This document shows positions 1,170 to 60,895 of a stretch of DNA of 64,000 nucleotides, piece after piece; position 1 is the stretch's first letter, and the number at the start of each line of letters is the position of its first letter. Location of the stretch: contig NC_135766.1 of the NCBI RefSeq assembly GCF_052425735.1, positions 25,172,001 to 25,236,000 of the forward strand, written 5' to 3'. Made by a program: the position numbers and the translations under genes. The DNA comes from Oculina patagonica. Taxonomy: Eukaryota. Below the pieces are notes generated by a model. It worked only from the letters and a program-made list of their open reading frames with translations, searched no databases and was not told where the DNA came from.

Positions 1170-4100
1170 CTTTTAAGTGGATGAGATTTGAAACACGGCT
1201 TGACAGCCCCTGTTAGTATACTTGAAGTTGGACACACCTGACAGTGAAAGAAATTAACGTATGTTAATAAATTGTATAGCGCGTTTTCACTTAATGAGTG
1301 TCAAAAGTAATTCGCATTTGCACTGGTTTTGTGAACTTTGCCAACTGCAGGTTAAAAGAGAAACTCGCGCCACTTTCTAAACCAGTCACAAGTAAAACCA
1401 AAACCAATCCTGACTTGCTCATGCACGTTTTCCTGTGTTTTGCGCTAGCTACAATATTTGCATCAAGTTTTTAAAAACTAAATTGTTTGTGTCGTGATTA
1501 TTGGCCAGAGTACGTACTTGGGTTTTGGTTTTATGACACTCAATGATATTGAAAACTTCTCTTACTGATAATCATGAAATAGTAATAATAACGGTTCAAT
1601 AGCAGTTTTTCCACAAAGGGGTAAATCTTCAACTGCTAACTAACTAAAATAAAAACAAGTGAGCCAGAAAATTAACAAAAATGTGAAGCCAACGAAAGAT
1701 AAAGTCAGCAATTATGAAATTTGCATATTCAATGCTAACAGCCATTTAGTGTACTTCAATTTGCTCACCTCCAGGTGAATCCCCTCATCGATCACTCTCT
1801 TGTAGAGTGCAATGTCTTCCAGCACATGGTATCCATGACCTATTCTCTCAGCGTGAAGAATATCTAATGCCTGAAAACAATCACAATGAATCTTTGAGTC
1901 ACATGTGCTGTGAAAATTGTGCGGTTCAGAAGGAAGGCCATTGGAATTTGGAGGAGAGACGAGGTTTTAAAATCTAAAGTTTTTTGAAGAAGCAAAACCA
2001 GAATTTCCAGTGAGATTGGAGGAAGGGGGGGGGAGGGGTAGGTTTAACCAAAAGTCTTACCATGGGAGAGATATGTATACTTCCTGGGGAGAAGGGGATA
2101 GCCTGCAAGGGACAAGCATCTCAATGTAGCGTGAGAAGCGATACTCTTGACTTAGTTGAACCATTATTATAACACGACTCAAACTTGAAATCAGCTGCTG
2201 CACTGAGTGGTGAGCCACCTAGTTGATCCTTTTTTTTTATTCTCATCACCTATCTGCTTAACAATGTATTGACAATGTAAGGAGAAAATAGATTTTAACT
2301 TCTTACTTCTTTTACACTGGCAGCTGGAGCAGCCTCCCCAGCATGAACTGTTCTGTGTATGTTCAGTCTTCTGGCTTCCTACAACAAGACAACATCATCT
2401 GCATTCTTATTACAACACACTAGATTTTGAGACAGCATCACACAACATTGGGTACCAAAGGTTCACAAATGTCTGATCGTCTGTTTGATCATTCCAAGTT
2501 GTCCATTTGACCATTTTCAGACCATCTGACTGACTGACTGACTGACTGACTGACTGACTGACTGACTGACTGACTGACTGACTGACTGACTGACTGACCA
2601 TAAGAGACTTGGGATCACTATAATATTAGTAAATTAAGTCACCTGAAGAGTGTTAACTATTTTTCTCAAAATGTTCCAAAGAAACAAAATTATTACACAA
2701 ACTGCTAAAGAGATGGAACCAAACCTTAAAAGCAAAAACATGTCCTTTCATGGCTGGAATCTCGCCAAGCGATTCATCACCTGCGAGATCAATTCCGACA
2801 ACTCCATCATTTGCAAACTCCTGACAGAGGGAAAGGATTTCTAATGACCAATCTAAGGAAAAGAGAATACAAATTAATTACAGATGTGATGTGACCAGTA
2901 TCTTGTGGAAGGGGACAGGGGGTGGGAGTCCCAGAGTATAGGGGTGGGAGGGGTAGAGGAGGTGGGAGAAATGAGGGGGAGGAGTGGGATATCCAAGGTG
3001 GCTGGAACTGGGAGAAATTGAGAAAAATTTTGCAACATTTCATAATATTTTGCAATAGAAAAAGCACAAAGAGGCAGGTACCACTAATGAAAGGAGTGAA
3101 AGTTCACCTGAATGCAATCTGTTTTAATCTTCTTGAATTTTGCCCAGCCATGCCCCTTTTTGGCCTTTTCATGTTGTTTTTTTAGTTCTTCTACAGTTTT
3201 AAGCCATTATTGTGATATTTCAGTTAATTCTATGATCAACCAGTTGGTCAGAGCCGAAATTGTCTAAAATTGTGTAACATAGCCCCTTTAACGGGAAAGG
3301 CAGCACTTCACCACAGAATTAATACATGCTGGAACGCTGGTGGATGCTGGGTCTTATTGGCAGCCCTAACCTTCTTTCAAGAATAAAGTAAAACATTTTT
3401 TTACCAGGTGCGTGTCTCATACAGCAGAGAATGGAACGTGCTATAACTCCAAAATCGCGCTCTCCTTTTTTAAGACCTCTATTCACAGCTTCTACTATAT
3501 CTCTTGGTGAAACGCCATTTTCCTCCAGTTGATCGGCATCTGTTGTACATAGCAAGTGAGGGCTGTAACGAACTTCAAAGTACATTACACCTGAAGATGA
3601 CTGGTCCTCACAAAATTCATAAGCAATTCTTTCAACTGCTGCAGTATCATCACTGAAAACAAATGATAATTGTAATAAATGATACAGAAAAGCACACTTT
3701 AAAATCTAGGTGCCACTTATAGAGGAAATATATCTTGCCATGATTTGCAATGACTTGAACTGAACAGTGAGCTTTAACCTATATCTCAGTTGCTATAGGC
3801 ATATATAGTTGGTCTCCTCCACAAACTATGCTATAGGCAACTGTATGACCCACAATGCTATACCTGCCAACTCTCACGCCTGCGAGTTGAAAACTTCGAT
3901 CTCACGCCAACTCATGCTTACGAACCAAACCACAAACGACACACTTTCCAAAATATGTAAACTCAAACCATTGTAAGAAAAGAAAACTCCATGTAAAATG
4001 AGTAAATGGCAATACTTTCCCCGAAATCTCAGAGTTTTGACAAAAAAGCGTTGGAATGAGGTTGTGTTTAAAAAACATGTCCATGCACTGAGATCAGGAT

Positions 4101-7100
4101 ATGTTCGGAACTTCTTCGGAATACTTTGGACATTATTGTATTGTCTTCGGAAATCCTGGCACTCTCAGGATAAAAATCTCACGCCTTTGATCCAGAAAAA
4201 GTTGGCAGTGGGATCGAAGGTTATCAGTGAGAAAATGTCTGTTATGTAAAGGCCTAGCTAGCAAAAACAGTCGCCTCTCATTGCTTCCTGACTACTTTGT
4301 GCATGACGTGAAATGACGTGATGTAAATCTGTCCGAATCTGGTCATGAACCCTGATTGATCAGTTATATATATATATATAGTAGTTTATTTACATAATGT
4401 TAATTCATAATTTATAATCATTACACGAACAGGAAAAAACAGATGTTTTTGCGGACTTAAAGTTGACCTGAAGAAAGATGGTAAATGATGATAAATTGTA
4501 TTACTAAATTCAATTTTAGTACTTACACAATAACAGGTAAGAAAATATGGAAACATCCTAAAAAGCCTCTCAGAGATAATGGTTTATCCAAACTGACAGA
4601 CACAAGATCTTGTAAATGTTCCTCATCATAAGCAGGTAACTTGAAGTGTTTCTTCCTGCAATTAAAAAGTTTAACCACAGCTGGTATCTCACAAGATAAT
4701 CTAGCAATTACTGACAAAACCCTTATTAAGTGGGCACATTTGGGGAAATGGTAAGCGACTGCTTAATAGGAGTTAGTCAGAAATTAGCAAAGGGCGTGTT
4801 TGAAACCACTTAATAGAGGTAGTTGCTAAATAAGGGTTTTATTTTATTTAAAGTATTAAAACCAGCCATAATTTTGCGTCTTCGATTTATAGGGGCGGCT
4901 GGTGGCTGCTTAACAGGGGTGTGACTGTAAAGTCAATCAAGCCTCAAAGGTTTTTAGATAAAAACATGGGTCTTGTAAACATTGACAAAACACATTCAAA
5001 AGAGCTAGGGGTGCTTTATATTAGAAAGGGGACAGTCTTATGGGAAAGTAAAAAAGTAAAGTCTGCTTCGAGCCTAGTGGCCCATACAGGCCGGAGCTTA
5101 TCCCGATTTCCGTAGCATTAAGCGACTAGGAGTATTGCTACTCCCCCCTGGATGGGATGCTAGTTCATCGCAGGGTCACCCCCCAGCAGTAAATTCGCCG
5201 ATACCCATTTATACACCTGGGTGGAGAATGGCACTGTGAGAGCAAAGTGTCTTGCCCAAGAACACAACGCAGCGCCCCGGCCAGGCCTCGAACCCAGGCC
5301 ATTCGACTCGGAGGCGAGTGCGCTAACCATTAGGCCACCGCGCCTCCCGCAGTCTTATGGGAAGGAGAGCCCTAAATTTATCAATCATGATGGAACCTAC
5401 AATCATGGAAACACTGGGAACTATATTAAATGAGTAACTTCAATGATAGATTTGGCAAAAGTAGCATTTGTCCCCCCCCCCCCAATCAAGTATTGGTATT
5501 CATACTTGGCCAAGTCAATAATGGTCTGTATCCTCACAGCACCATCAAGGTGAACATGAAGCTCTACCTGGAAATTAAGAATAAAATTATAAGAAAAAAT
5601 GCAGACAAATGTAGTAAAGAATTAATAATAACAATAATTCATCCGTCTGGCTCCTGAGTCTTGATTAATATTTTAACTAGGGGTGTCAAATGTATAATGC
5701 AACACTTTATGAGACTGATATCTTTTCTGGGAGCCCGAGACCTTTTCAGCCTTGCAAAAGAAATGGAGCCTCCAAGAAGGCGTTAAATTTATTTATTTTG
5801 CCACACAAACAAAAAATATAATTATGAAAAAAATAGATAATACAAAATCAATATACAAGATAATAATTGATACACAGGACTACAATATAATATAAAATTA
5901 GAAACAAAATGGCGAGGGAACCTAATAAAAAACCACGGGGCTTGTAAGCTTAGGTTCCCTCACAAGAAAAACAGATGACTAGTTAAGGTACTGAAGTAAT
6001 GACAAGATTTGATAGAAGACGGAGTTAATAGTTATCAATAATATATGTTTTAAGTTTTCTTTTAAAAGATGCCAGTGATGAAGAGCTTGAAATTTCAGGT
6101 GGAAGTGGATTAAAAAATTTAGGACCTTGAAAAGAAAAAAGAAAAATTAAAGAAAAATTTGAGATGACAGACCCCTGAAATTTGGCTAAAATTTTGTGAG
6201 ACACATTTTTCCAGGGACCATTCACCACCCCTTTAACTATTATATTATCAGTAGGCATATACCACACCTGTAGGCTTTTGTACATATACCACATGGGGTG
6301 CTCGTTGGGCTGTAAGGGGCCAGGGATGGACACTCTTGGATTTGACTTATGCATAATATTAAAATAATATTAAAAAGTGTGTGCACGTGGAGGGGGAGTA
6401 CTTCCCATGTTCCCTTTCCATACCTTTTACTCTCATTTTACACCTTTTTTTCTGTGCTATTTATTTTGCAAAATAATACAAAATTTTATGACATTTTCCT
6501 AATTTTTATTGGTTTTTGCCACCTTGGGAATAATTCCACCTCCTGCCCTCTCTTCTTAAGGAGACTAAAGCTAATTATTATAAAACCAATATTGACTCAA
6601 ACTCTGGCAACCCTCGTGCAATCTGGAAAACATTAAATGAATTAATGGGTCGTAATGCCAAAAGCAGCGGTATTAATAGCATTAAGATTGATAGTGTTGC
6701 AGTCACCGACTCTCAACAAATTTGTGAGCTAATGAACTCTCATTTCACTTCTGTTGGAACTAAGCTTGTTTCATCGTTGTCCAACTCTGATTATAGCTTT
6801 GTTGACTATCTAAAGTCAGTTGACTGTGATTTTAAATTAAAGTCCATTACAGCTAAGTGCGTTTTCGACCTAATAAACAAATTAGATGTTGCCAAGGCAA
6901 CTGGATTAGATGGCATAACAAGTAAATTATTAAAGGAGGCTGCTCCTGTAATATCGCATTCTTTATGCTTAATTTTCAATGCTTCTATAACGAGTGGTAT
7001 CTTCCCTGATCAGTGGAAGTATGCTAAAGTCTCCCCAATACATAAGAAAGATAACACTGATGATCTCAACAATTATAGACCTATATCGGTCATTTCTGTT

Positions 7101-9093
7101 ATTGCTAAGCTTTTTGAAAGAATCATCTATAATCAGCTACCGGTATATGACTACCTTAAGGTAAATTCCCTTTTATCAAATTGCCAGTCTGGGTTTCGTT
7201 CCCTGTATTCTACTCTTACTTCGTTATTAGATGCTACTAATGAATGGTTCTTCTGATCAATATTGACAATGGTCTCTTAAACTCTGTTGTCTTTCTTGAT
7301 TTAGCCAAGGCATTTGACACAGTTGACCACAGCATTTTGCTTGCCAAATTAGAGATGTATGGTATCTCTGGAACAGCACATCAATGGTTTCATTCATATC
7401 TTTCTAATCGCAAGCAAAAATGCTACTTAAATGGCTGTCTATCAGAGTTCTCAGATATCCCTTGTGGTGTTCCTCAAGGATCTATCCTCGGCCCTCTGTT
7501 GTTTTTATTATACATCAATGATTTACCCAAATGCTTAAATTTCTCAGCCCCAAGAATGTTTGCAGATGACACTAATTTAACCATTTCTGGTAAAAATTAT
7601 TTTGAATTACAGAATGGTACAAATCATGATTTGGAAAATATTAGACAGTGGCTCTTAGCAAACAAACTGAGTTTAAACACCACTAAAACAGAATTTTTAA
7701 TTATTGGCTCTAATTACAATCTTGCCAACCTAGGCTATTCTCCTGAGATCAGGTTAGGTGATACAAGTATAAAACGTGTCTACTCTGCTAAATCTCTTGG
7801 TGTTTATATCGATGATCGTTTATCATGGTCCACTCATATTAACCATGTGGCAAAAAAGGTCTCATCTGCAATCAGGGGCTTGAGACAAATAAGGCAATTC
7901 GTTAATGATGATACTCTTATAACTATTTATAATTCCCTTATCCAGCCATCTTTTGACTATTGTGATTTGGTATGGGATAATTTATCTAAAGGTCTAGCAA
8001 CCAGATTACAAAAATTACAGAATAGGGCTGGTAGGGTTATTTTAAGGGCTACCTATGATGTAAGCTCAAAGGATGTTTTAAAGGAACTTGGGTGGTCTGA
8101 TCTAAAAACCCGAAGAGCTAAGCATAAGGCCACTCAAATGTTTAAAATTTCTACTGGTGAAGCCCCATCCTATTTAACTGACAGATTTTGCAAAGTCGAG
8201 GCAAGAAATCCTTACAACATTAGGAACAGTGAATTAAATATTAATTTACCATTACCGAAAACTGATTTTTTAAAAAAAAGTTTTCTTTATGCTGGTCCTA
8301 AATTGTGGAATTCCTTGCCTAATTCAATTAAGTCAGCTAAATCTCTTGCAGCCTTTAAAAGAGGACTGGAAGATATTGACTTTGATATGTTACTATCTTC
8401 TTATTGATAGCTTGTCCCACTCTAATATTTATGTGTTATTTAACTCTATTTAAATTTTTAAATCTCACTCGGCTTTCATGAAAACCAATGTAATTGATGG
8501 AATTCCGAGGTTAAATAAAGTATCACTCACTCACTCACTCTTGCATCCCTACTCTGCACCCCTATTTTCCCAGGCTCCCCCCCCCCACCCAGTACTTTTC
8601 AATAGTCTCCATTATCAGGATTACAAACCTGAACTTACTTGTTATTCAAATTAGCCAACCATTAAACAAAATAATACTTTGTGATCTCTAGTGCACATTA
8701 ACAACAACACTCCGCTATTAATTTATAGATGTTTCGCCTTATCTCGGCACCAGAACATTAACTGGCGTAATTTATTCTGAGAAACATGAGATTTTAGAGT
8801 TACGTGCGTGTCACGTCGCCAATATCTTTGCTTTTGTTTATAGAGTAAAACGATATTTTATGGTTTACAGATTGCTCACATAAACATATAGGCAAGCTTA
8901 ATACTACGACTTACTCGTCTTAGTGAGTGAGGAAGGTTTCTTGTACTAGAATCAGAGTTAAAAAACAAATAATTCGACTGAAATCACATGCAAAGACTGT
9001 TCAAAGACAGCTCAGCTAATTCGCCGGCAACATGGAAAATCAAGGTCACACAAAATACGCACTTACTTTTGACTTAGGTACTTTTAGCGCCAT
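1170..9093 (-). CDS. ADA: Adenosine deaminase, multi-exon; 3' exons lie left of the window
   Basis: GT-AG bounded, phase-compatible exons: 9067-9093 (MALKVPKSK), 5506-5567 (VELHVHLDG), 4527-4655, 3405-3652 (YFEVRYSPH...ARSILCCMRH), 2725-2852 (GIDLAGDE), 2307-2378 (HRTVHAGE), 1769-1870 (ERIGHGYH), 1170-1237 (VCPTSS). The motifs are the hallmark ADA zinc/catalytic motifs. The first exon is less certain. Confidence 0.95.
2526..2598 (+). repeat. (CTGA)n microsatellite in ADA intron
   Basis: About 18 perfect tetranucleotide units. Confidence 0.95.
5047..5349 (-). mobile_element. tRNA-derived SINE with 14-bp TSD
   Basis: Minus-strand head has A box (TGGCCTAATGG) and B box (GGTTCGAGGCC). Flanked by direct repeat CAGTCTTATGGGAA at 5033-5046 and 5350-5363. 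Confidence 0.85.
5785..6135 (-). mobile_element. 3' fragment of CR1/L2-type LINE
   Basis: FSFQGPKFFNPLPPEISSSSSLASFKRKLKTYII ORF2 end, plus (TAAA)n tail. Confidence 0.65.
6575..8540 (+). mobile_element. 5'-truncated CR1/L2-clade LINE (RT) in ADA intron 1, frameshifted near 7250
   Basis: ORFs 6645-7256 and 7244-8407 carry NYRPIS, QSGFR, FLDLAKAFDTVDH, GVPQGSILGP and FADD motifs. Ends with AATAAA and (TCAC)n tail. Confidence 0.93.
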
Positions 9094-9943
9094 CACTCTC
9101 CACCATACAGATCTTTCTAACTACAAAGAACTACTGTTCCAATGTATAAATTTGTCATTTTCCGGCTTATTACTGCAAAACTTCGATCGGCACCACAGAG
9201 GTTGGCCAAGGTCAGTTGTCGTACCCAGCGCCCACTCGTACTTTGTTCCACTGGCCTGGAGGGGGAGGGGTGGTGGGCGTGATTAGGGCTGGGGTGGGGG
9301 TTGGGGGTACACTTAGTGTACACTGGGAATGCGAATCTTTTAGCCGAATGGAACAAGAAGTTCATGAGGCAAAACGATATTGAAATATTTCATTTTTAAT
9401 ATTTATGAGTCATTTGTAAATAATTGTATATATTTTATAACTTTTTGCTCATTTTTAAATAAATTTTAATCAATATCTAAACCTTTCACTCATAGTAGCT
9501 AATAGTACTTACGTTTCCTCATTCATGCGTCCGCAAATATTTTAAAGTTTGAAGAATATTTTTTCTTTGTGGCTCACCTGTAAACTAGCTGGTGTGTTCC
9601 CCGAACTTTGCTGGTTATATCTGCGGGGCGCATCGAAATCATAGCTAAGTGTAATGATCACATTAAACGTTGTATTGTATTGTATTGCAGTTGTATGATT
9701 GTATGATGGCCCGAACCACCGTGGTTTTTCAATGTCACAAAATGTGTATCTGGTTAAATTTTAAGTTGCTAATTTTCTTGCAAAAGTTGTTAAAATTCCT
9801 TGTACACAGCTGGAGTCGTTTATTTAAAAAACAAATCCATTAAATTCCGAGAAATCAAACTCTAAATACCCTACAACAAAGAATTAAAGTGAAAGTGACC
9901 TGATATAGCGGAAGCTCCGGTGACTGAACCGTGTCACCGGAAG

Positions 9944-11293
9944 TCATAAACTTTTCTGTTTCTCCTCTGACTGTTGCTCTTGCAAAGAAGCAGCAATGTT
10001 AGCCATTGCCATCCAGTCCCCATAAGACATAGAAGGAGTTTCCACAACATGTGGGATGAATTTCTGAACTCGATCCAGAATAGGATGCGCGATATCTGTA
10101 CCTTCAACAAGTCCTAGCTTGTCCTTTTGGTAATAGAGGGGCGTTCCTCGGAGCAACATCAACGGGAAGGCTACCAGCGATCCATCCGTTTTCTCCTGGA
10201 TCTTTTGAATGGTTTGTTGAAAGCTCGTCACGGTCTGCAAAGGCAGGCCAAAAATAAGACTGATTTCGTGTTTGATCTTGCGCTGATGAACAAGCGCCAA
10301 CTTTTCTATAACTTTCTTAGCTAAGCTGTGCGGATTGGCGTTTCTGACGCGTTCGATGTACAACAGTTCCATTGCGTCCAATGTTTGCACGCCAAATTCC
10401 AAAACTACTTCAGCTCCTGTGGTTCTGCTCAGCGATTCTACTTGATCTAAAAATGCAGGGGTGACCCTCTCAGGACGGCACTGCAGACTAATTTTCCCTG
10501 AAAATCTAAGCCGCTCTAATAAATCAAGCACCATGTATCCGTTCGTTGTATTGAACGTCGGATCCAATACAGCCAAGTCTCTGACGTGATTATCAACAAA
10601 CCATTCAATCTCCGATATTATACGATCTTTCTGTGAGTGCTGAATTTTTGTCCAGCTTTTATTTTGAGACGATGAAGAGGCTGGGTCTCTATGTTGGCAA
10701 AATGAGCAACTGTATGGACAGCCTCGAGTTGTCTCCCACCTCATGAAGTACTGAGGTTGGAGGGTGCCATCCAAGAAAGGGGAAGCGAGCTCGGACAGTG
10801 TGGTAGAAGTGTGAAGACCCTTGTCTTGGGAGTTCGCTAAGTGGACTCCTAGGATATCTTCCTTTCCTTCTGCTAATTCTGACACAGCGTGTTCTGCATA
10901 CCCACGGATGAACACATCTACTTCTGGATAGTATTTCTCTAACTGGCCTTTCTCGATGTACGAGACCTGAGGACCTGCCATAACAACTCGACCACGATAA
11001 TTGTACTTTTTCAGCTCCTTAAGGATTGTCTTGAGAAAAGGCTCGTTCCAGACAAAGCCACCAAACATGAGATCATATTTCGAGTCGTTGTACTGTCTCC
11101 AAATGGTATCAAGGATGTTTCTTGCTAACGAATACACCTGCGTTTCTTCTGCAATGTTATAACTATGAGCATTGTATTCGATTTTCTTCTGCTTTAAATG
11201 ACTCACAATACTCGCTACTCCAAGCGATAGTCTTGGATCTTTCGGTCGAATATGATCCAGACTAATCAAAATTGGAATTTTGGATCGTAGCAT
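9944..11293 (-). CDS. Cobalamin(B12)-binding-domain radical SAM protein, intronless, 449 aa
   Basis: CxxxCxxC cluster motif (ETTRGCPYSCSFC). N-terminal B12-binding-like segment (SLGVASIVSHLK...FVWN...VVMAGPQVS). Downstream DPTFN, EFGVQT, LIFGLPLQT and LMLLRGTPLY motifs typical of class B radical SAM enzymes. Confidence 0.88.
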   Translation of the reverse strand: MLRSKIPILISLDHIRPKDPRLSLGVASIVSHLKQKKIEYNAHSYNIAEETQVYSLARNILDTIWRQYNDSKYDLMFGGFVWNEPFLKTILKELKKYNYRGRVVMAGPQVSYIEKGQLEKYYPEVDVFIRGYAEHAVSELAEGKEDILGVHLANSQDKGLHTSTTLSELASPFLDGTLQPQYFMRWETTRGCPYSCSFCQHRDPASSSSQNKSWTKIQHSQKDRIISEIEWFVDNHVRDLAVLDPTFNTTNGYMVLDLLERLRFSGKISLQCRPERVTPAFLDQVESLSRTTGAEVVLEFGVQTLDAMELLYIERVRNANPHSLAKKVIEKLALVHQRKIKHEISLIFGLPLQTVTSFQQTIQKIQEKTDGSLVAFPLMLLRGTPLYYQKDKLGLVEGTDIAHPILDRVQKFIPHVVETPSMSYGDWMAMANIAASLQEQQSEEKQKSL

Positions 11294-11304
11294 TTTGATT
11301 TTGT

Positions 11305-11420
11305 TTTCCTTGAAACGAAATGAACTTTTATAGTACCAAGAAAACTGTTTATTTTTATGGCGTCATATAAACTCGTTTCTCGGAAAAAGCGGAAGTCACG
11401 TGCTGCAGGCAACTTTTCCC
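11305..11420 (-). promoter_or_regulatory. Putative proximal promoter of radical SAM gene
   Basis: GAAACGAAA (IRF-like, ~11312-11320), TTCTCGGAA (GAS-like, 11377-11385), CGGAAGT (ETS-like, 11390-11396), CACGTG (11397-11402). The block is largely conserved upstream of the paralog. Confidence 0.4.
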
Positions 11421-11544: not shown

Positions 11545-12860
11545 TAGTATGAACCAGCAGGAGACTCGACTCGAACATATGCAGCGAACAAAACCAAGAG
11601 AAAATAAGGGTTGACAAAACTGAATGTTGTCTTTGACTGAGACGCGGTCAGCTGGATGTTTCTTGAGTATACTGGTTTGTTGGACAGTTAAGGTCAGGTT
11701 AGATTTCCTTATCAGTTTCTAATTTGTTACTCCAAGTGCAAATTGTGGCTGGCATCGTAGGCACGAGAGTCCATTATATATAGTGAAAACTTTTTGCAGC
11801 TTTCTATAGTTGGTGCCAGTATTGCGGCGCGTGTACGAAACTCAGTGAAAACCCGACGCTTATTGTAATTTCTGTCAGTCTTATTGCTCATGAACAGAAG
11901 GCAAAATTGATGATATTATTTTCACTGTATTTTCCCCTTGCCAGCTAGCTTCAGAGAGTAACGCAACCTGAAGGTGTGTTGGCAAGATTGTACCTTTAAA
12001 TCGAGGCATGTACTTAAACCCGAAACAACGAAACGAAACCACTGAAACTAAACCGCTGAAACAACCGAAACGGCCCAAACGAGCGAAATGAAACAAAATT
12101 AATCACCGAAGCAAGCAAACCTTTACCCTTTGGATCGATAATCAATACCGGAATTTTAATTTAAATCGTAACCTTCATCATTCTGTGTTCCTTGAAGCGA
12201 ATCGTTTATCAGTGTCATGTGTTTCTCGGAAAAAATGGAAGCGTTTTAAAACCGCGATCTCGTCCCCGGTCCGGTGGTTTGTGGCTTGGATAAATACTGA
12301 TAGGTAACTCGTTTAGTAAAGTAAAGAAGGAGGTAGTATGCCTACCTTCTCTTGTTGTTCTATCGTCGCTCAACGCATTAATTAATTATTATAACTGAAT
12401 AGCAGATCGATAGAGTAAAACTTGGCCCGGTATGAAATTTTCAATACTCTTTCAGTTACATTATAGGAAACGTGGGCACTTTCTTTTCCCCAGCCCCACC
12501 ATGTCTCCCCTACCCCCACCAGCACCAGCACCACCACCATCCCCATGTGAGTTAAGTACGTAGTATAAACCAGCAGGAGACTCGACTAGAACATATGCAG
12601 CAAACAAACTGAATGGTGTCTTTGAAGACGCGGTCGGCTGGATGTTTCTGAAGTATACTGGGTTTGTCGGACAGTTAAAGTCAGGTTAGATTTCCTTATC
12701 AGTTTCTAATTTGTCACTTCAAGTGTAAATTATAGCTGACACGCGAGAGTCTATTACAATGAAATATTGTTGGAGCTTGTTCCAATTGTAAGCTAAGTTA
12801 CGTTTCAATAAGTTCAGGAGTTAAGGCCACTGTAGCGACGTGTGTACGTAACTCATTGAG
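11545..12860. repeat. Diverged ~1 kb-spaced direct duplication upstream of radical SAM gene
   Basis: 11548-11750 matches 12563-12740 (ccagcaggagactcgact...gtcaggttagatttccttatcagtttctaatttg). A relic of the promoter block also occurs at 12180-12243. Confidence 0.8.
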
Positions 12861-19192: not shown

Positions 19193-20538
19193 TGAATGAA
19201 TGAATGACTTTATTAACGTGTCTAAAATGTTTAGCTGAGGGGAAAAGTCCCCTCTACTAATTGTGGACACCTGACTAAGAAAAAACTTTAAAAAACTTTA
19301 ACCTATCATTATACAACTATTAATAATTTAAAGTTAAAATAAGTTAAAAAAGAAGCTATTTACATAATAAAAACGGGTAAAAAAAAGTAAATCTATTTAT
19401 ATGATAAAAAAAGACTATATACATGGCTAGCTATTTACATAATAAAAACAGGTAAAAAAGTAAATCTATTTATGTGATAAAAAAGACTATATACAGGGCT
19501 AGTATTAATAGTCACAGAGGCGGCAATTGCAACGTTCATTGTTTAAAAAGTTATTGAAGTCACGTTTCCGAATCGTTTTTTTAAATGTCTTAAGTGACTG
19601 GCAGTTTCTTTCATCCGTCGTCAGGTGGCCCCAGAGCTTCGGCCCCAGGTATCTAATAGAATGCTTTCCGTACGTAACTGTAGTGAAGCGGGGCATCGAA
19701 AAGTCTGATTGTCTCAGCTGGTAGGACGACTGATGAGGCTTAAATAGCTGACGGATCGGATTTGGACTAAGCCCATTTTTAACCTTATACATCAGTATGC
19801 ATATATCTTGCAATCGCCTATTTTTTAAAGTAGGTAGTTCTGCCCTCTTTAGTAAAACTTCGTAGCTTGATCGATCATCTTTAAAAACTGCTCTTAATCC
19901 TCTTTCCTGTATCCTCTCCAATCTACGTGTATCACTTGCACGACAGAAATGCCAGACTAGATGACAAAATATTAAGTGAGGTAGGATAGCTGCTTTATAA
20001 AGCTGTAATTTGGCTTTTGTTGGGATAAGATTTTTTAGTCTCATAATGACTCCTATTCTTTGGCTCGCCTTTTTGCATACAGTAGTGATATGGTCTCTAA
20101 AACTTAGTTTATCATCTATTGTTACTCCCAAAAGATTCAGGCTGTTCGATGGACTGATTTCAGTATTTTTTATCTTAATCACATCTGTGTGATACTGGTT
20201 GGCACCATTGCTACAGATGTTCATAGTCTGATACTTTTTGAGATTTCCTTCCAATAAGTTGGAGTCGTACCACTCGGTAGCGAGAGCAGCGCTTTCCTTT
20301 AATTTTGTGGTGACAGAATGTAAGTCTGCCCCCATTTCGTAGATCTGGTGGTCATCAGCATACATCGATAGGGATGAGGTTATATTATGCGTCATATCGT
20401 TTTGGAAAATATTCCAAAGAAGGGGTCCCAGTGCGGATCCTTGCGGACATCCTCGACTTGTACATCTAAACGAGCTTGTAAGGGATCCTATTCTCACCCG
20501 ATTGTATCGATCACATAGGTAGCTACGCAATAGGTTCT
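19193..20538 (-). mobile_element. 5'-truncated CR1/L2-type LINE inserted into Penelope RT
   Basis: ORF 19505-20530 has GCPQGSALGP and YADD motifs. AATAAA plus (TTCA)n tail at 19193-19214. Removing it restores ACG GAA TCT ATC CTA GAC in the Penelope frame. Confidence 0.9.
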
Positions 20539-23867: not shown

Positions 23868-24560
23868 ACTTTATCTCCGATGTGATACTCTCTCTTTCTG
23901 TGAGCGCTGAATTTTTGTCCAGCTTTTTATTTAGCGACGATGAGGAGGCTGGGTCTCTATGCTGGCAAAATGAGCAACTGTAAGGACAGCCTCGAGTTGT
24001 CTCCCAGCGCATGAAGTCCTGAGGTTGGAGGGTGCCATCCAAGAAAGGGGAAGCGAGCTCGGACAGTGTGGTAGAAGTGTGAAGACCCTTGTCTTGGGAT
24101 CTCGCTAAGTGGACTCCCAGGATATCTTCCTTCCCTTCTGCTAATTCTGACACAGCGTGTTCTGCATACCCACGGATGAACACATCTACTTCTGGATAGT
24201 ATTTCTCTAACTGGCCTTTCTCGACGTACGAGACCTGAGGACCTGCCATAACAACTCGACCGCGGAAATTGTATTTTTTCAGCTCCTTAAGGATTGTCTT
24301 GAGAAAAGGCTCGTTCCAGACAAAACCAACCAAACATGAGATCATATTTCGAGTCGTTGTACTGTCTCCAGATGGTATCGAGGATGTTTCTTGCTAGCGA
24401 ATACACCTGCGTTTCTTCTGCAATGTTATAAGTATGAGCATTGTATTCGATTTTCTTCTGCTTTAAATGACTCACAATACTCGCTACTCCCAGAGATAGT
24501 CTTGGATCTTTCGGTCGAATATGATCCAGACTAATCAAAATTGGAATTTTGGATCGTAGC
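23868..24560 (-). pseudogene. Truncated, frameshifted paralog of the B12 radical SAM gene
   Basis: Near-identical to the 5' half of 9944-11293. Frameshift near 24325 (caaaaccaaccaaac vs caaagccaccaaac). Homology stops shortly after the CxxxCxxC motif. Confidence 0.9.
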
Positions 24561-25393
24561 ATTTTGATTTTGTTTTCCTTGAAGCGAAATGAACTTGTAA
24601 TATTTCCTAGAAAACTGTTTATTTTTATGGCGTCATATAATTTCGTTTCTCGGAAAAAGCGGAAGTCACGTGTTGCAGGAATTTTACATGATTCATTCTC
24701 CGTCTCCAATAAGTTGTCTCAGGGTCTCAAAATCATCGCAGAGAAGACCCTGTGATAGGCTCTTATCGATAGTGCTCCTAAAAAGGCATTTAATGCTTAA
24801 TTAAAGCAGTGATTGTTTTTTGCCAAAAAAAGTGCTAAAATAATGCTATTTTTTTTTTAAAAAAAGTGCTCGTGGGTTACATAAAAATGCTCACTTTTTC
24901 CCATTTTTTTTTAAACATAGACTATTACATTTTTCAGATTTTCAGTTACATTTTTCATTTTCTGCCTTGGCTGGCTGACTTCCATTGTTCCTCGATGACA
25001 ACGTGGATGACGTCATCTTTGGAACGAGTGTGACGGACTTTGTTTCTGGATCTAGAAGGCAACTAGACTGCTAACCTATCAAACCTATTCCCCAGGCCTC
25101 TTCTCGGCTCCTTTGACCAAAATGAGGGCAAAATGCATCTGGGAGGCTTTAGATAAATAAAGTCAGATTGTGCTTTTTAACACAAAACTATACAAATAAT
25201 CAGTCGAAAATCCAAAATAATGCTAGCAGTGCTTTTTGGGATAAAATGTAAAAGAAAAAGCTCTCGAAGCCAAATAATGCCAAAAACAACTATCGGCAAG
25301 AGCCCTAACCCTGGGAACCAAATTGCAAGGTCCATAGTCCGATCCTAGGACTCTCAGCTAGACTTCTTTACAGATTGTGCTTGGCAAAAACGA

Positions 25394-25464: not shown

Positions 25465-27391
25465 ACCTATTCTGGCTTTTTCAAACTACCATTTATTACT
25501 GTATCACTTGAGGTTATGTCAGGGGCATGCAGGTTATGTTCATGACGCAGAAAAACTTGTGTGACGCCTCACTTACCGTCAGCGTCACATGAACATATAC
25601 AAAAAGCCGGGTCGCGGGACCCTTTTACCGCGTGATCCCGGCCGCGCGTTCTCCCCTAATATACGAGCGAAACAAGATTTGCCGAAACTAACCTGAGTAT
25701 AAGGCCTTCCTAAGGGGAGGGGGCTACCCCCGGCTTAGAAAAGCCTGATACTCAGGTTATGCCAAAAGGCTCTGTGACGTGTGACGGGTTGTGACAGGTA
25801 ACAAAATCTCCATAGTTCACTTTCTAAATCAGGTACCAAATGTGCTGCATCATAAAACGACAACAAATTTTATGCCTCGTGAGAGATAGGAATGTTTCAG
25901 GAAAAAAGCGCTTGAGGGTCGCATCGACATGACGCAGACGGTAGTGAGAGGATGGCTTTTATAACCTAAACTAGAAACTGACGGTATATTCAGTAATATC
26001 TCAAATATGACTGTAAACAGTGGTTAAAATTAGTTATACAAGGGTATATCTAAAGATCACTGAATACACCACTAGCCACGTCATGTCGTATGGACATGAC
26101 GCATGATTCCTGTCCCCACTGAGGCGTTAATTATTGCTTGTCATTATGATGCAAATTGCAAGTTATGACGCAAATGCGCGCTGCGCCGAGCCATGTCATT
26201 AGCATTTCACAATACGAACAAGTCGATCGGGCGATAGAACTGTGTAGCAAGCAACGAGTAAGGGCTAAAGATCTCAAAGCTGCTGGCGGAAATGGTATTA
26301 AGGCTACCTTTACGAGCTTGGAGATGGTATATGCAGTGTCTGGAAACACATCCATGGAAAACACAACTCATTTCGACAGGTTCGACTTTGAACTTTGAAT
26401 TCACACTAGTTATTAATTATTCAAACTTTTAGAGCCTCTCGCAGTACAGTATGCTGAGCAGAAGATCAAACATCTATCTTTAATGTGATACACTACTAAG
26501 ATCAAGAAGCCATACAGGCGAGATTTCCATTCTGATCTACAGAAAATCAGGCTTTAATTTTAAGTGCAACTCGCGTACACTATTCAAGCTTCCTTTGCAA
26601 TATTTAAAGAGCTTTAAAGTTATATTTTCAAGCCAATCGTGGCCATAAAACTTTACATAAGCTTACATTGTACACACCATTTTGCTGCCAATTTTTGGAG
26701 TAAGCTCCAGGTGTCAACTGTAGCCGTAGCTGATTTATTTGGCTTCTTATGACCTGTGATTGCGTCTATAGATAACTTCGATGTTGATCTTTCGATGTAA
26801 ATTTACATAAATACGATTGACAGAGGCCGGCGCGAACCCGAAAAGTAAGGATGGGCCAAATCCAATCGTCAGCTTGTCTCTGATACTGACATTCTAGGTT
26901 AACGTTTAAATCCTCAATTTCCACTGAAAAAAAAAACTTTTGAGCCTTCTTGTCTCAACGTTTGTTCGATGCGAAGATGCCGCTGTTACGCAGTGTTGCA
27001 GGTTTTTGTAGACTCCTTTTGTTTTGGGGGCTAGGAGCATTGTCCCTGTTGTTTGTTCTGTTGTTCTTTCGAAAGACGGCGAGCCAGCCATGTTAGGCCA
27101 CTCGTAGGAAAATTTCACATCCTTTAAAGAAGAGTTTGCATAACGTTTTGTAATACTAGTAGCTACTAGTGCTGTACATACAGCGTTTTCATGCTTTCAA
27201 ACGAGAATAGTAACGCTATGTAACGCAATACAATTCACTTAGGTAACGCAATACACTGGAAAATTCCTCTGCGCAATCTGTCAAGCACACTGGAAAGGGT
27301 GCTTGACAGATTGCGCAGTTTCTTGAAGGGAATGCTGTTCGAACAATTGTGCATTTGCAAGTATTTCAATGTATTTTCGTTTTATTTGCAG

Positions 27392-27885
27392 GGGCCCTTC
27401 TCGGAGCCGGAGATTTTATTGCGCAACAGTTTGTCGAAAAAGTCCCATTGCGAGATCACGATTTCGTGCGGACAGCTCGCATGACAGCCATCGGAACTGT
27501 GGTAATCGGCCCAATATTCCACGTTTGGTATTCCAAACTCGACAAACGTTTTGTTCACAAAACTCCAGGAAATGCAATGAAGAAAATGACAGTTGATCAG
27601 AGCATTCTAGCACCAGTGTTTCTCGTTTTATTTTACGGAGCTGTAGGTGTTGTGGAACGGCGCACGATCAAACAAATTGGCGACAAGATCTACGAGGAAT
27701 TTTATCCCAACATGGTAGTAAACTACAAGGTCTGGCCTGCTATACAGTTCTTGAACTTCTATCTGTTTCCAGCGCATCTACGGGTATTGGTTGTAAATTT
27801 TGCGTCACTTTTTTGGAACACTTACCTGTCATGGACTTCGCATAAGGAACTGCCGGAACATTTGACGCAGTCCTGTACGGAGTAG
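27392..27885 (+). CDS. MPV17: Mpv17/PMP22-family mitochondrial inner-membrane protein, main exon; first coding exon not located
   Basis: GDFIAQQFVE, RTARM, KKMTVDQ, NYKVWPAIQFLNFYLFP and WNTYLSW motifs. Phase-1 acceptor ttttatttgcag at 27391. Confidence 0.85.
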
Positions 27886-50340: not shown

Positions 50341-50869
50341 ACAGTAAAACGGACAAAGTTTTCTTGTCGGATTACAGCTCTTTTCAAGAAGGATATAAGC
50401 TTTAAGGTGAGCTAATGTCTCCATACTCTACTGTACAAGACGAAGAGCGTTTGATAAATTGTATTTACTGCGAAAAATAAATTTGGTTACGTTGTAAATC
50501 TTGACAAGTGGTTTGTTTTTGTTCGTGCGGCCATCATGAACCGTGCATAGTAAAGAAGAAGAAGGTTTTAGACCCGTTCATTTCGTTCAAGGTTTTTTGG
50601 TCTAGTTGTGTTTATGGTCAAAAAAAAAAGGAGGAAGAAACCGAACTTTACGAATGAACAAGTCGTTTTTGGTGGACTGAATTATTCTTTTAAGCGAAAT
50701 TGCTCGCGCAGTTGTCGTTTTCTTTCGTAAACAACAACAACTTCAAACGCCTTCATCTTTTCTTTTCGCGGTCTCAAAATATCGAGGGAACATCCCACTA
50801 TGATTCAGAAAAAAAAAATAAAACCTAGCCACCTAGAAGTGAAGCTTAAACGTTTTTTAAGAAACCTAA

Positions 50870-51790
50870 ACAAATGTGTCAACGACTTTGTTGTGATTTT
50901 TCACCGCTCGCGAAAAAATATAATTGTAGCGAGCGGTTCATTTGACCGTTGTTCAAATGCATTATTCTCGAGGAAAATTTTTGTTTCGGCCCTTAAATCA
51001 AAGAGACCTCCAACCATGAATGGTATTAATTTAGTAAAACGCAAAGCAAGTCATTGAGCCGACTCTTTTACATTTTTAGGCTCTAAACAAGTGTGTCAAC
51101 GACTTTGTTGTGATTTTTACCGTTCGCGAAAAAATATAATTTTAGCGTGCGGTTCGTTTGGCCGTTGTTCAAATGCATTTTTCTCGAAGAAAAAATATTT
51201 TTTGCGGCCCTTATATCAAAGGGACGTCTAACCATGAATGATATTATTTCGATGAATGTTATTGAGCCGAAAATTTCATATTTTTGGACTCTAAGCACAA
51301 GTGTCATCGACTTTGTTGTGATTTTCACCGTTCGCGAAAAAATATAATTTAGCGTACGGTGTTTGTTGTTGTTTAAATGCGTTTGTTTGTTTGTTTTTGC
51401 GGCCGTTAAATCAAAGAGATGTCCAACCATGAATGATATTAATTTAGTAAAACGCAAAGCAAGTCATTGAGCCGGATCTTCACATTTTTAGACTCTAAAC
51501 AAGTGTGTCAACGAGTTTGTTGTGATTTTTCACCGGTCGCTAAAAAATATAATTGTTGTAGGCGGTTCATTCGGCCGTTGTTAAATGCTTTTTTTAATTT
51601 CGAAAAAATGTTTTTTGCCGCCCTTAAATCTAAAAGACGACCAAACATGAAAAATATTATTTCGATGTAAGTTATTGAGCCGACTCTTTCGCATTTTTTA
51701 GACTCTAAACACAAGTGTGTCAACGAGTTTGTTGTGATTTTTACCGCTCGCGAAAAAATATAATTTAGCGTGCGGTATTTGTTGTTGTTG
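50870..51790. repeat. Internal AT-rich tandem array, ~210-bp unit, about 4.5 copies
   Basis: GTGTCAACGACTTTGTTGTGATTTTTCACCG(C/T)TCGCGAAAAAATATAATT recurs near 50875, 51092, 51300, 51503 and 51716. Confidence 0.9.
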
Positions 51791-51850
51791 TTTTAGCGAT
51801 TGAATCCCATACTCTCGTAATTCAGTTTCGGCATGGAGCAATTCTTAAAT

Positions 51851-52372
51851 TTATTTCACAACAAAAGTCTGGTACCATAACCAGAAAGCATGACATTCGG
51901 TCATTGGACAATGTCCTTCGTATAGATGAAAACCGCAACTAGGTAAAGGCTGTACAATGGTCTCTTTCAGCACGTCGTATTTCGGACATCCGTACAGTTC
52001 TAAATTCATGCTAGGAATGTTCAGTTTGTTCAACAAGTCTCTTTCGACGTGACCTCCCTTGTAAGCCACCACGGTTCTCTCGGGGGTTTTGGTCTCCTCG
52101 TACAAATCTGTCATCACCTCCTCCACCCTGTCATACTCGTAGGCCTTTTCTTCCTTTCTGGGTTGATACGTCAGTCCGTGCACGTTGTATTTGACGTAAG
52201 ACACGGTTTTTTTGTCTCTGGAAGATAAGTTGCACCACGACATTCTCATGTAGAAAGCATGGCGTCCGAACTTTTCTTGCCAAGTGTAATAACCCAACTC
52301 GCGTACTCGAAACGTCTTCTCCACAAAGTAACCTTCCAAGTCCAAGATCATGCACACGTTTTCCGGAGTCAT
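51851..52372 (-). CDS. DEDD/DnaQ-like exonuclease-fold accessory protein
   Basis: N-terminal ILDLEGY...VRELG (ExoI-like), HGL, YKGGHVERDLL, C-terminal HCPMTEC. Confidence 0.6.
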   Translation of the reverse strand: MTPENVCMILDLEGYFVEKTFRVRELGYYTWQEKFGRHAFYMRMSWCNLSSRDKKTVSYVKYNVHGLTYQPRKEEKAYEYDRVEEVMTDLYEETKTPERTVVAYKGGHVERDLLNKLNIPSMNLELYGCPKYDVLKETIVQPLPSCGFHLYEGHCPMTECHAFWLWYQTFVVK

Positions 52373-52437
52373 GCCAGAGCCAACTGCACTCTGATGCTTG
52401 ACGTAGAAAATATATGAAAATGTTTAAACTGTAAATC

Positions 52438-53349
52438 TCAATGATCCAAATTAGGATATTGTTTCTGGGAAATGCATCTCAGATACAGTTGATTTCTCAG
52501 CATTTTCTCTTCATCCGAGTCGTACTTCACGCCAGCCAATTCCGGGGGGAGAATAATTTTCCCTTCTCCATCCACCCAAAACTTTTGCTCTTGACACTGT
52601 TTGACCAACGACTCGTCCAAGGGAAGATCACCAATCCAATCCTTGACCGGGGGTGGGTAGTGTTGTACTTTGAAGGCGGGTCTCCCATCCAGAATTCGTT
52701 GCGGTCTATCCACCACGTCTTGTCCTCTTCTGGGGTATCCAAATTCGTCCCTAGAGTCCAGTCCAGACCTTCTCGAGTAGAGGGGATCCTCGTTTCCCAC
52801 ATATTCCTTTCCTTCCAGCCAGGCTTTGATCTTGCCAAACGGAAGACTGTCTGCCCATTGGAAGAACCGGCATTTCCCCTTTCTGCACTTGAGGTAGATC
52901 CTGTTCGGGTTGCTCTCTGATTTCGACATGCTCAGAATGAGACTCTCGTTGCAGTAACATTTCATCTTATCCATGTTCCAATAATAGTAAGCCGGTAATT
53001 GTTGATTGACCGCCACCACGTACTGGTCAATGTGGGCGCTACCGGTGCAAATGAAACAGATGGTGCCTTCGCTCGTGTGGGGGCAAAAGTAGAACTCCCA
53101 TCCCCCGTCCGTCATTCTCTTGGTCAGCGGTTCTTTGTGGACGGGGCAAACCGGGTCGCGCTCCGTGTCGTCAAAGGTCTGTTGTAGGAACTGGTCGGGG
53201 TCGAAAATTTCACCCTCCTCCAACACTTCCTCTTTCAACTCCATCTTCTTCTTCTTTGTAGGATGTCTCTTTTTACGGGGGACTTTGGGTTTCTTGGGGT
53301 TTCCAGGCCCTCTCCTCTGTCGCTTTTTTTGGGGTTCTGCTACGTCCAT
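52438..53349 (-). CDS. GRF-type zinc-finger protein with basic NLS-like N-terminus
   Basis: CYC...SKSESNPNRIYLKCRKGKCRFFQWAD matches the GRF ZnF pattern. A second Cys/His cluster reads CPVH...FCP. Confidence 0.75.
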   Translation of the reverse strand: MDVAEPQKKRQRRGPGNPKKPKVPRKKRHPTKKKKMELKEEVLEEGEIFDPDQFLQQTFDDTERDPVCPVHKEPLTKRMTDGGWEFYFCPHTSEGTICFICTGSAHIDQYVVAVNQQLPAYYYWNMDKMKCYCNESLILSMSKSESNPNRIYLKCRKGKCRFFQWADSLPFGKIKAWLEGKEYVGNEDPLYSRRSGLDSRDEFGYPRRGQDVVDRPQRILDGRPAFKVQHYPPPVKDWIGDLPLDESLVKQCQEQKFWVDGEGKIILPPELAGVKYDSDEEKMLRNQLYLRCISQKQYPNLDH

Positions 53350-53359
53350 GGTGCTCTCG

Positions 53360-53545
53360 ATGCTCCAACTGAGGACTAACAGGAGACAACACGGCGCTTT
53401 TATACTCTACTCTCGGATGACGTCAATACGCACGAACCAACCAGAGAGGTAACACGTGACCTCTTCCGACCAACCGGCAATGACCCAGGTGACGTCATCC
53501 AACGTATAAAAAGAGCTGCGCGTCCATTTGTCGACTCAGTTGTAG
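53360..53545. promoter_or_regulatory. Symmetric bidirectional promoter
   Basis: Minus TATAAAA 53398-53404, TGACGTCA 53418, CACGTG 53453, TGACGTCA 53490, plus TATAAAA 53505. TCAGTT initiator-like motif downstream on each side. Confidence 0.7.
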
Positions 53546-53547
53546 CG

Positions 53548-53823
53548 ATGGAAAGCACAGAGAGCGATTCCAGCCAAACTCAAACTCAAACCCCACAAGT
53601 CAACGGTGTCTTTGTACAAGGAGATCCCAAGGACTGGGAACCATTGCCTTACTATAGGGATCTAAAAAGGGGCGATTATCAATCGGACGAAGATTACCTA
53701 TTGGAGCGCGCGAAACGTGGCATGGAAGCAGGCTACACGTTTATGCAGTGTCAAGAGCATTGGATGTGCGATCTGGAGAGTGCATTACACAAAGGTTCGG
53801 CCGAAGCAAGCCAAGAGCAGTGA
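53548..53823 (+). CDS. Hypothetical acidic viral protein (91 aa)
   Basis: ATG ORF directly downstream of TATA/Inr. Confidence 0.65.
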   Translation: MESTESDSSQTQTQTPQVNGVFVQGDPKDWEPLPYYRDLKRGDYQSDEDYLLERAKRGMEAGYTFMQCQEHWMCDLESALHKGSAEASQEQ

Positions 53824-53824
53824 C

Positions 53825-54598
53825 ATGGGTACGAGAGAAAACTGGATGGACCTGGAACAACGACTCTTCTACACCAATTGTACAAAGCTAGAAAAAAAGA
53901 TCCAGACCGACACGGGAATGAGTATGTTGTCGTTAGACTTTCCCACCACCACCATACCCGAAAACATTCCAAGGAGAGTCTACGTCTTCGAGGACATGGT
54001 GAAAGAGCGCGGGTGTGCCAAAAACCGCGTCACCGAAAGTGAATGGCTCAAAGAGAACCCTCACTGGAAGGGAGCCGTGATGGCGACCCTCAAAGACATT
54101 GGGCACGGTTATCTCTGGGATAGACATTGGAATGAATTTGTTTACGTGCCATTGCAGCGAGCCTTTTTCTTCATGACGTCTCGCAAACCGCCGCCCATTG
54201 GCAACGGCGTCTCGTTCTGGTTAAACGCGAACGTCTTCGACTTTGACGAACGGAGTGGTTTAGAAGATCTCATCGCCCCGTTGAGAGCGAGTGTAGCCCT
54301 AAGCCAGACATTGTCTGCTTACTTGAAACAACCTATCACGGTCGACGCAAACACGTACGAAGAACTGTGCAACCAACTGGCAACTCAAGTAAAATTGCAA
54401 CGCCTAGAAAGCAATCGTTGGCAAGAAATAGCGGATAGATTGTTAGACAGAGATCTCTGCAACCGTTGCGCCATGCAAAAAGACGAAGCTTACCTGGGCG
54501 ACGACTACCAAAAAGCCAAGCTGTGGAGACCTAGAAGTTGCGAAACATGTACAAAATCTTTTGATAACATATTTATTGATGCAGGCTATTTAAATTGA
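53825..54598 (+). CDS. Hypothetical viral protein with C-terminal CxxC...CxxC
   Basis: ATG 2 nt after the previous stop; CNRC and CETC pairs; AATAAA at ~54607. Confidence 0.7.
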   Translation: MGTRENWMDLEQRLFYTNCTKLEKKIQTDTGMSMLSLDFPTTTIPENIPRRVYVFEDMVKERGCAKNRVTESEWLKENPHWKGAVMATLKDIGHGYLWDRHWNEFVYVPLQRAFFFMTSRKPPPIGNGVSFWLNANVFDFDERSGLEDLIAPLRASVALSQTLSAYLKQPITVDANTYEELCNQLATQVKLQRLESNRWQEIADRLLDRDLCNRCAMQKDEAYLGDDYQKAKLWRPRSCETCTKSFDNIFIDAGYLN

Positions 54599-54624
54599 TA
54601 TTTTGAAATAAAAGTTCATTTGTC

Positions 54625-54936
54625 ATGGATCTGTATGGAAAGTGGGAGTGGTTGAAACGATTGTGCGAGAAAGCGTATGCTGAATTTGGGAGGGGTATAG
54701 ATATACCGGAAGATACAAGTGACTCCCCCTTGAGAGTGTTCGAAGCCACCCACATAGAACAAAACTATTTCAGATTGATACCGTTTATATTATGGTTGAG
54801 ACATTTCAAGGATCCAGCCGAGCTGTTTGCTTCTATTTACAAACTTCATCCGACCACGATCGAAGAGGCAGCTCATAAATTACACGTCACTTATATGAGG
54901 GTGGTCAGAGCGTCGTCGACATGCCAAAGAAGCTGA
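54625..54936 (+). CDS. Hypothetical viral protein (103 aa)
   Basis: ATG ORF tiling between the upstream polyA signal and the integrase. Confidence 0.55.
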   Translation: MDLYGKWEWLKRLCEKAYAEFGRGIDIPEDTSDSPLRVFEATHIEQNYFRLIPFILWLRHFKDPAELFASIYKLHPTTIEEAAHKLHVTYMRVVRASSTCQRS

Positions 54937-58923: not shown

Positions 58924-58925
58924 TG

Positions 58926-60893: not shown

Positions 60894-60895
60894 AG

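Follow-up and report, generated by a model that had tools for sequence, protein, structure and literature searches.

A conserved, predicted cobalamin-type radical SAM gene in the nuclear genome of stony corals, related to a bacterial phage-defence candidate

The subject of this work is a gene of the stony coral Oculina patagonica that encodes a radical S-adenosylmethionine (SAM) enzyme with a cobalamin-binding-type domain. The window, by which we mean the whole stretch of 64,000 nucleotides that was analysed (contig NC_135766.1, positions 25,172,001 to 25,236,000 of the forward strand; G000:C9:25172001-25236000 in our designation), lies 25 Mb into a chromosome-scale contig of a 529-Mb assembly. 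The gene occupies positions 9944..11293 on the minus strand as a single-exon coding sequence of 449 residues, and the protein is laid out as a Rossmann-like, cobalamin-binding-type domain (residues ~1-155), a radical SAM partial TIM barrel (~183-380) and a short C-terminal extension. The original prediction, an uninterrupted 449-residue open reading frame (ORF) joining a B12-binding-like domain to a CxxxCxxC radical SAM domain, is thus borne out by the ORF itself, by Pfam and by the cluster motif: the Pfam Radical_SAM family (PF04055) matches residues 187-364 at 41.1 bits, above its cutoff of 29.5, and the motif reads C192-x3-C196-x2-C199, with all three cysteines invariant in 20 of 20 aligned family members. 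The coral genome holds one full copy of the gene, that of the window, and one fragment.

Two host genes flank the locus. The conserved upstream neighbour, divergently oriented, is a Mpv17/PMP22-family gene (26298..27885, plus strand), and downstream on the same strand as the radical SAM gene lies an adenosine deaminase (ADA) gene whose exon 1 (9067..9192, minus strand) is found ~750 bp below the radical SAM stop codon. Spliced contigs of the RNA assembly X1 run from 9067-9192 through a small second exon of 34 nt (8912..8945, minus strand) to 5539-5564, the last stretch encoding the ADA signature ELHVHLDG; the joint 8945/9067 has CT..AC ends, that is, GT..AG on the minus strand. Exon 1 is joined in X1 either to the 34-nt exon or, in one contig that skips it, straight to the ELHVHLDG exon at 5564, and the small exon is therefore alternatively skipped. 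Further minus-strand ADA exons lie within 2304..5564, those at ~4532-4663, 3403-3675, 2722-2853 and 2304-2378 being conserved with Pocillopora, and the Pfam A_deaminase domain was found on the Pocillopora neighbour gene. The intron-rich ADA gene named in the original prediction is accordingly present, at ~750 bp rather than the 850 bp first given, and so are the host repeats reported nearby: reverse-transcriptase ORFs of a retroelement at 6645..8407 (plus strand), inside the ADA intron (8911 to 5565), and a second reverse-transcriptase ORF region at 19505-20530. The order Mpv17-like gene, single-exon radical SAM gene, ADA is also that of Pocillopora damicornis (L004-L006) and of a relative with 92% identity (L095). 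This synteny, together with the one RNA assembly that contains both the gene and spliced ADA, excludes a chimeric join and upholds the earlier case against contamination. The GC content of the radical SAM ORF is 44.1%, against 44.3% for the Mpv17 exon. At the Desmophyllum locus neither Mpv17 nor ADA was found within ±10 kb, a result we grade as uninformative, and a look-up of the Montipora locus yielded no record. This is a real host gene and not a contaminant, and its conserved adjacency to ADA could be mere inherited gene order.

The local duplication that had been described exists as well, but it is partial: an 807-bp, frameshifted pseudogene fragment (23873..24679, minus strand), 94.8% identical to 10608-11409. 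It takes in codons 1-230 together with 116 bp of the upstream region, and an insertion of 1 bp throws it out of frame beyond about residue 78, just ahead of the conserved W-N-E motif. The truncated copy lies ~1.6 kb from the Mpv17-like gene and the intact gene ~15 kb from it. The proximal upstream region (11294..11409, minus strand), which has A/T-rich TATA-like motifs and is a putative promoter, is the sole upstream sequence common to the truncated copy and the L095 locus of the relative; about 110 bp upstream of the intact ATG are shared with L095, and no more. From this short shared stretch and the positions of the two copies it follows that ~12.5 kb, including a reverse-transcriptase ORF, was inserted in this lineage. 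Just upstream of the intact gene, within the inserted sequence, a ~260-bp element occurs in two copies that are 75% identical (11545-11802 and 12561-12778). A ~36-nt piece at 12005-12042 reaches a depth of 260-350 in X1, with a few partly fitting reads in the poly-A runs; most likely this piece represents either a repeat or a fragment of an abundant small RNA. In another coral assembly (L094:10001-10858) a 285-residue truncated relative, 71% identical, occupies another locus, close to genes of the short-chain dehydrogenase and CDI-domain kinds, and partial copies have therefore arisen more than once.

Full-length orthologues with 79-92% identity are present in Montipora capricornis, Pocillopora damicornis, Desmophyllum pertusum and many further assemblies. 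Montipora belongs to the Complexa, and Pocillopora and Desmophyllum to the Robusta, so the gene is older than the split between these two clades. The ratio of nonsynonymous to synonymous substitution (dN/dS) among orthologues, which had been put forward as a check, came to 0.05-0.10: 0.10 with the closest relative, at a dS of 0.44, and 0.055-0.07 in comparisons with more distant corals, for which dS is near or beyond saturation. On these sequence comparisons, the gene was present before Complexa and Robusta diverged within the Scleractinia, and strong purifying selection has maintained it ever since. In X1, an unspliced, transcript-like contig of 1928 nt at a depth of 19.7 covers 9413..11330, the contig itself not showing the strand; depth outside these limits drops to 0-3, and the contig implies a 3' untranslated region of ~530 nt and a short 5' leader. 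Since X1 also holds the spliced ADA contigs, its material is RNA. Many coral orthologues sit on Logan contigs of 1.6-5 kb, a transcript-like size. Overall, we are confident that the gene is functional and expressed.

The fold of the protein was predicted with AlphaFold2 (AF2) from a 20-sequence alignment, giving a mean predicted local distance difference test (pLDDT) score of 90.5. The model shows strand/helix repeats at residues 6-152 and alternating strand/helix elements over 183-377, and a partial TIM-barrel core is recognisable both in the model and from Foldseek matches to many solved radical SAM enzymes. The top solved structures are TokK (E 4e-25, template modelling (TM) score 0.70) and CysS, followed by TsrM, MgmA, AprD4 and OxsB; MiaB, RimO and Elp3 are further structural neighbours, and a search of Swiss-Prot models agrees with the solved-structure matches. 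At the sequence level, the family profile matches CysS and TokK with an E value of 1.5e-30. The N-terminal domain superposes on the cobalamin domains of TokK, CysS and TsrM, and W82 of the motif FVWNE, which does not vary among the 20 aligned members, pairs with CysS W75 and TokK W76. The paper on the CysS structure places those two residues 3.8 Å below the cobalt, on cobalamin's lower axial face (PMC12846815). The B12-binding Rossmann fold originally assigned to the N-terminus thus appears in the model as a Rossmann-like alpha/beta domain that superposes on TokK and CysS and keeps the tryptophan, with cobalamin use a prediction; judged from sequence and model together, the coral protein probably binds cobalamin. 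The protein has four cysteines in total, the sole one outside the motif being C272, and the N-terminal domain has none, so that an auxiliary cluster is lacking; the second, N-terminal three-cysteine cluster of the MiaB/RimO type is absent. NCBIfam returns weak matches to many cobalamin-type radical SAM families, all below cutoff, the best being KedN5 and TIGR04013, and the KedN5-family model NF033712 scores 58.8 bits against a cutoff of 700, which does not place the protein in that subfamily. The Gigaspora homologue clears the threshold of the Pfam B12-binding family PF02310 (35.2 bits). No extra fused domains were found in longer homologues.

By sequence, the coral gene is an animal member of the class B radical SAM family that PADLOC lists as M51A. 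The PDC-M51A model of PADLOC matches the coral protein with an E value of 7.4e-113, residues 1-442 aligning to model positions 1-416 of 420, and the 20 aligned sequences, which come from corals, protists, fungi and bacteria, average 47% identity per column and share ~80 invariant positions, among them the motifs RPKDP, GPQVS, FIRGYAE, the CxxxCxxC block and PLMLLRGT. PDC-M51 is a two-gene phage-defence candidate from a guilt-by-embedding set, and a figure legend of the same preprint names an example made up of a radical SAM protein and a dNK protein (bioRxiv 10.1101/2024.01.29.577857). The commonest neighbour in 80 bacterial and archaeal loci of the family, taken from GTDB genomes, is a protein of ~200 residues encoded directly downstream on the same strand, which matches the Pfam families Thymidylate_kin and dNK and the PADLOC model PDC-M51B (E 3.5e-58). 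This bacterial kinase also matches a PADLOC model named VakA (E 1.5e-17), the meaning of which could not be verified, and the M51B model itself matches ordinary thymidylate kinases in 13 of 14 control genomes. The kinase is present, 36-234 bp downstream and on the same strand, in 24 of the 54 loci of the Myxococcota/Planctomycetota type with enough room for it, and in none of the 15 loci of the clade nearest the corals; no conserved operon partner was found in Legionellales-type loci. Beside the coral gene, too, there is no M51B kinase, the flanking genes being ADA and Mpv17. A search for look-alikes in the ESM Atlas returned nothing beyond the bacterial family, and a full-text literature search found no paper describing the coral gene, PDC-M51, VakA with viperin, or pdam_00010362; the main text of a 2016 eLife survey of horizontal gene transfer in corals mentions neither radical SAM nor B12.

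Outside the stony corals, the best matches are 41-49% identical and belong to a dictyostelid, Anaeramoeba, two glomeromycete fungi, a diatom, one nematode record, and metagenome-assembled genomes (MAGs) of Legionellales, Coxiellaceae and Rickettsiaceae. Orthologues in other cnidarians or animals would be expected at 50-75% identity, and no full-length match in that range was found among 5.8 billion proteins; the two matches at 71% are truncated copies of 280 and 285 residues, and P0109, the one whose position was inspected, maps elsewhere. One nematode record aside, other sequenced animals appear to lack the gene. We placed 69 sequences in a tree (IQ-TREE, LG+C20+F+G4 with posterior mean site frequencies (PMSF), rooted on the kinase-linked bacterial group), in which the near clade (100/100) stands apart from the kinase-linked bacteria and consists of two subclades, a and b, a split that recurs in a 187-row FastTree. 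The seven corals, which are monophyletic (100/99), share subclade a (100/100) with Anaeramoeba flamelloides plus two metagenome sequences, and with a further eleven unlabelled sequences. The largest unlabelled group comes from marine metagenomes of the Tara Oceans type, on contigs that are gene-sparse, have 33% GC and carry an exon-like LicD gene fragment, and its source is therefore probably a eukaryote; the 80 relatives from GTDB genomes that were retained and placed all lie outside this subclade. In subclade b (99/93), Legionellales, Coxiellaceae, Rickettsiaceae and other proteobacterial MAGs are interleaved with eukaryotes, namely Tieghemostelium, Paraglomus, Gigaspora, Attheya, a Panagrolaimus record and EukProt entries. 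The Panagrolaimus record (P0148, UniRef, Panagrolaimus sp. JU765) pairs weakly (90/69) with a proteobacterial MAG sequence and could be contamination or an independent transfer.

This distribution fits an acquisition, or a patchy retention, that predates stony-coral diversification. The two possibilities offered at the outset, horizontal acquisition and patchy retention, are both supported: the protein belongs to no widespread, vertically inherited eukaryotic family, and the non-coral matches are scattered at 41-49% identity. The description of the enzyme as typically prokaryotic holds for its class B architecture but not for its nearest relatives, which are eukaryote-associated rather than typical free-living prokaryotes. 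A recent transfer from free-living bacteria can be set aside, as the best bacterial matches are 40-46% identical and fall into the other subclade, and so can a giant virus or other viral source, a scan of IMG/VR having returned no relative. A more serious alternative is that the gene is an ancient eukaryotic one, kept in stony corals and lost many times elsewhere, with no horizontal step. Anaeramoeba, the closest labelled relative, is indeed a eukaryote, the gene-sparse contigs with the LicD fragment carry at least one of the unlabelled sister groups, no GTDB relative joins subclade a, and base composition is fully host-like. At the same time, this history needs independent losses in nearly all animal lineages, other cnidarians included; the 50-75% identity range is empty of full-length matches; the gene is intron-free in an intron-rich genome; and eukaryotes and intracellular bacteria are interleaved in the sister subclade, which shows that the family moves between hosts. 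We consider this alternative unlikely, though deserving of serious attention, and favour, by a clear but not decisive measure, an ancient transfer from a eukaryote-associated source over extreme patchy retention.

Overall, the explanation we prefer, and consider somewhat better than an even prospect, is that the gene is a genuine, functional nuclear gene of stony corals for a cobalamin-type radical SAM enzyme of the kinase-less branch of the M51A family. The enzyme would combine an N-terminal cobalamin-binding Rossmann domain with a single [4Fe-4S]/SAM radical core, and the gene would derive from the kinase-less branch present in scattered eukaryotes and intracellular bacteria. By analogy with TokK and CysS, cob(I)alamin would be methylated by SAM; a second SAM would then be cleaved at the cluster to give a 5'-deoxyadenosyl radical, which would take a hydrogen from an unactivated carbon; and methylcobalamin would deliver the methyl group, in the ping-pong manner of those two enzymes. 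That the coral enzyme is a methyltransferase, as this analogy suggests, seems to us an evenly balanced proposition. As to the reaction, our best guess is that a small and conserved substrate, perhaps a nucleotide, undergoes radical methylation that depends on B12. Very high conservation across kingdoms and a kinase partner in the bacterial sister group would suggest a small universal substrate, for example a nucleoside or nucleotide, and we put forward a substrate of that type tentatively, as a possibility somewhat short of even.

The conservation that suggests a universal substrate can also be read as the mark of a housekeeping enzyme that modifies a macromolecule (tRNA, rRNA or protein) and plays no part in immunity; that PADLOC lists its bacterial cousins would then be incidental. 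A mean column identity of 47% with ~80 invariant residues and dN/dS values of 0.05-0.10 would suit such an enzyme, its structural neighbours include the protein methylase MgmA and the RNA and protein modifiers MiaB, RimO and Elp3, and in the near bacterial clade the gene stands alone, with no conserved operon partner. Against a housekeeping modifier, its patchy distribution would be odd, with the gene in stony corals and one nematode record for all other animals among the named matches, and 24 of 54 Myxococcota-type loci place it in an operon with a nucleotide-kinase-like protein; the near-neutral isoelectric points give no hint of nucleic-acid binding, a point we grade as uninformative. We regard a housekeeping role of this kind as unlikely, roughly on a par with an ancient eukaryotic origin. 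An antiviral role, proposed by analogy with viperin and CMPK2, is in our estimate a little less probable still. Its specific form, in which stony corals would have taken the catalytic half of a bacterial system against viruses into their own service and would use it, as a viperin counterpart that depends on B12, to make a modified nucleotide (C-methylated, for example) that blocks viral replication, we hold to be an improbable hypothesis.

Several observations weigh against the cobalamin-dependent, M51A-derived enzyme that we prefer. The Pfam B12-binding family (PF02310) matches residues 62-140 at 25.4 bits, below its cutoff of 32.1, and the C-terminal domain of ~200 residues that helps to form the substrate pocket of TokK and CysS is missing from the coral protein. 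AprD4 has the same two-domain architecture and is not known to use cobalamin, so that the fold alone is no proof of binding. Tight conservation is more usual for housekeeping modification enzymes than for immune effectors. No match to an M51B-like kinase was found in the whole coral genome, in a search that is blunt on intron-split genes. Expression is documented by one RNA run, X1, whose type is recorded as a guess, and the poly-A tag runs X20-X22, at ~3 M reads each too shallow to be informative, gave zero reads on the gene. Finally, PDCs are predicted because they are embedded within known defence systems, and most of them are unvalidated (bioRxiv 10.1101/2024.01.29.577857).

The first of these points bear most directly on a further alternative, in which the N-terminal domain is a degenerate, cobalamin-free Rossmann module, as in AprD4, and the enzyme uses its radical for something other than methylation, for example dehydration, rearrangement or C-C bond formation. 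Besides the sub-threshold Pfam score, AprD4 and OxsB, the latter not a methylase, are among the structural matches, and the NCBIfam matches to named methylase families are all far under their cutoffs. However, the W-N motif that aligns with the sub-cobalt tryptophan of TokK and CysS shows no variation among the 20 aligned members, and the best matches in both sequence and fold are true cobalamin enzymes; we therefore think a cobalamin-free enzyme rather improbable. As for the idea that the ORF is a bacterial or protist contaminant or an assembly chimera, which its single exon and prokaryote-like domain architecture might have suggested, it is ruled out for practical purposes by synteny with two host genes in three coral assemblies, by host retroelements and a decayed partial duplicate close by, by host-like GC, and by one RNA run that holds both the gene and spliced ADA exons starting ~220 bp below the gene's contig.

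Elsewhere in the window, positions 45537-64000 form a block of higher GC (48-54%). A minus-strand ORF of 1296 residues in it (45537-49427) encodes a type-B DNA polymerase domain of the viral/organellar kind; an rve integrase that also has a chromodomain lies at 54965-56008, and several further ORFs are unassigned. The block looks like an integrated Polinton/Maverick-like element or an endogenous virus.

Animal cobalamin enzymes, as taught, are two, methionine synthase and methylmalonyl-CoA mutase, and none of the approximately eight animal radical SAM enzymes is known to have a cobalamin domain. If our preferred explanation is correct, the coral protein would be a third B12-type animal enzyme, one that reef-building corals have apparently kept and expressed from a time before their two major clades diverged. 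It would add a reaction to coral metabolism and a new reason for the dependence of corals on bacterial B12, and, should the antiviral role prove true, coral antiviral defence would be tied to B12 supplied by the coral's own microbes. In this context, the gene ties a bacterial defence candidate to eukaryotes, as was earlier the case with viperin, cGAS and gasdermins. Because conservation is so high across the family, chemistry solved in one member, bacterial or coral, would explain all of them.

Comparison with characterised enzymes places these possibilities in perspective. TokK/ThnK and CysS (PDB 7kdx, 9n1b) share with the coral protein the Rossmann cobalamin domain, the radical SAM barrel (TM 0.70, E ~1e-24) and the sub-cobalt tryptophan; identity is ~20%, however, the coral protein has 449 residues against 645-681 and lacks their C-terminal substrate-pocket domain, and their substrates are pantetheinylated antibiotic intermediates that are not expected in a coral. 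OxsB, of oxetanocin A synthesis (PDB 5ul4), is by its entry title a cobalamin-dependent radical SAM enzyme and is a structural match (E 3e-14), and as it acts on a deoxyadenosine phosphate it offers a precedent for a nucleotide substrate with such an architecture; it differs in its 12-13% identity, its 744 residues with extra domains, and its reaction, a ring contraction carried out with an HD-domain partner. Viperin (RSAD2) with CMPK2, and the prokaryotic viperins with their nucleotide kinases, resemble the coral case in logic alone, a radical SAM enzyme and a nucleotide kinase that extend from bacterial defence to animals; viperin is not known to have a cobalamin domain, belongs to another branch of the superfamily and is absent from the family and fold matches of the coral protein. 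Unlike PDC-M51, itself a candidate for defence, the coral gene is eukaryotic and monocistronic, has no adjacent M51B kinase and lies on a separate, strongly supported branch; in common with it, the coral protein matches M51A from end to end and carries the invariant motifs of the family.

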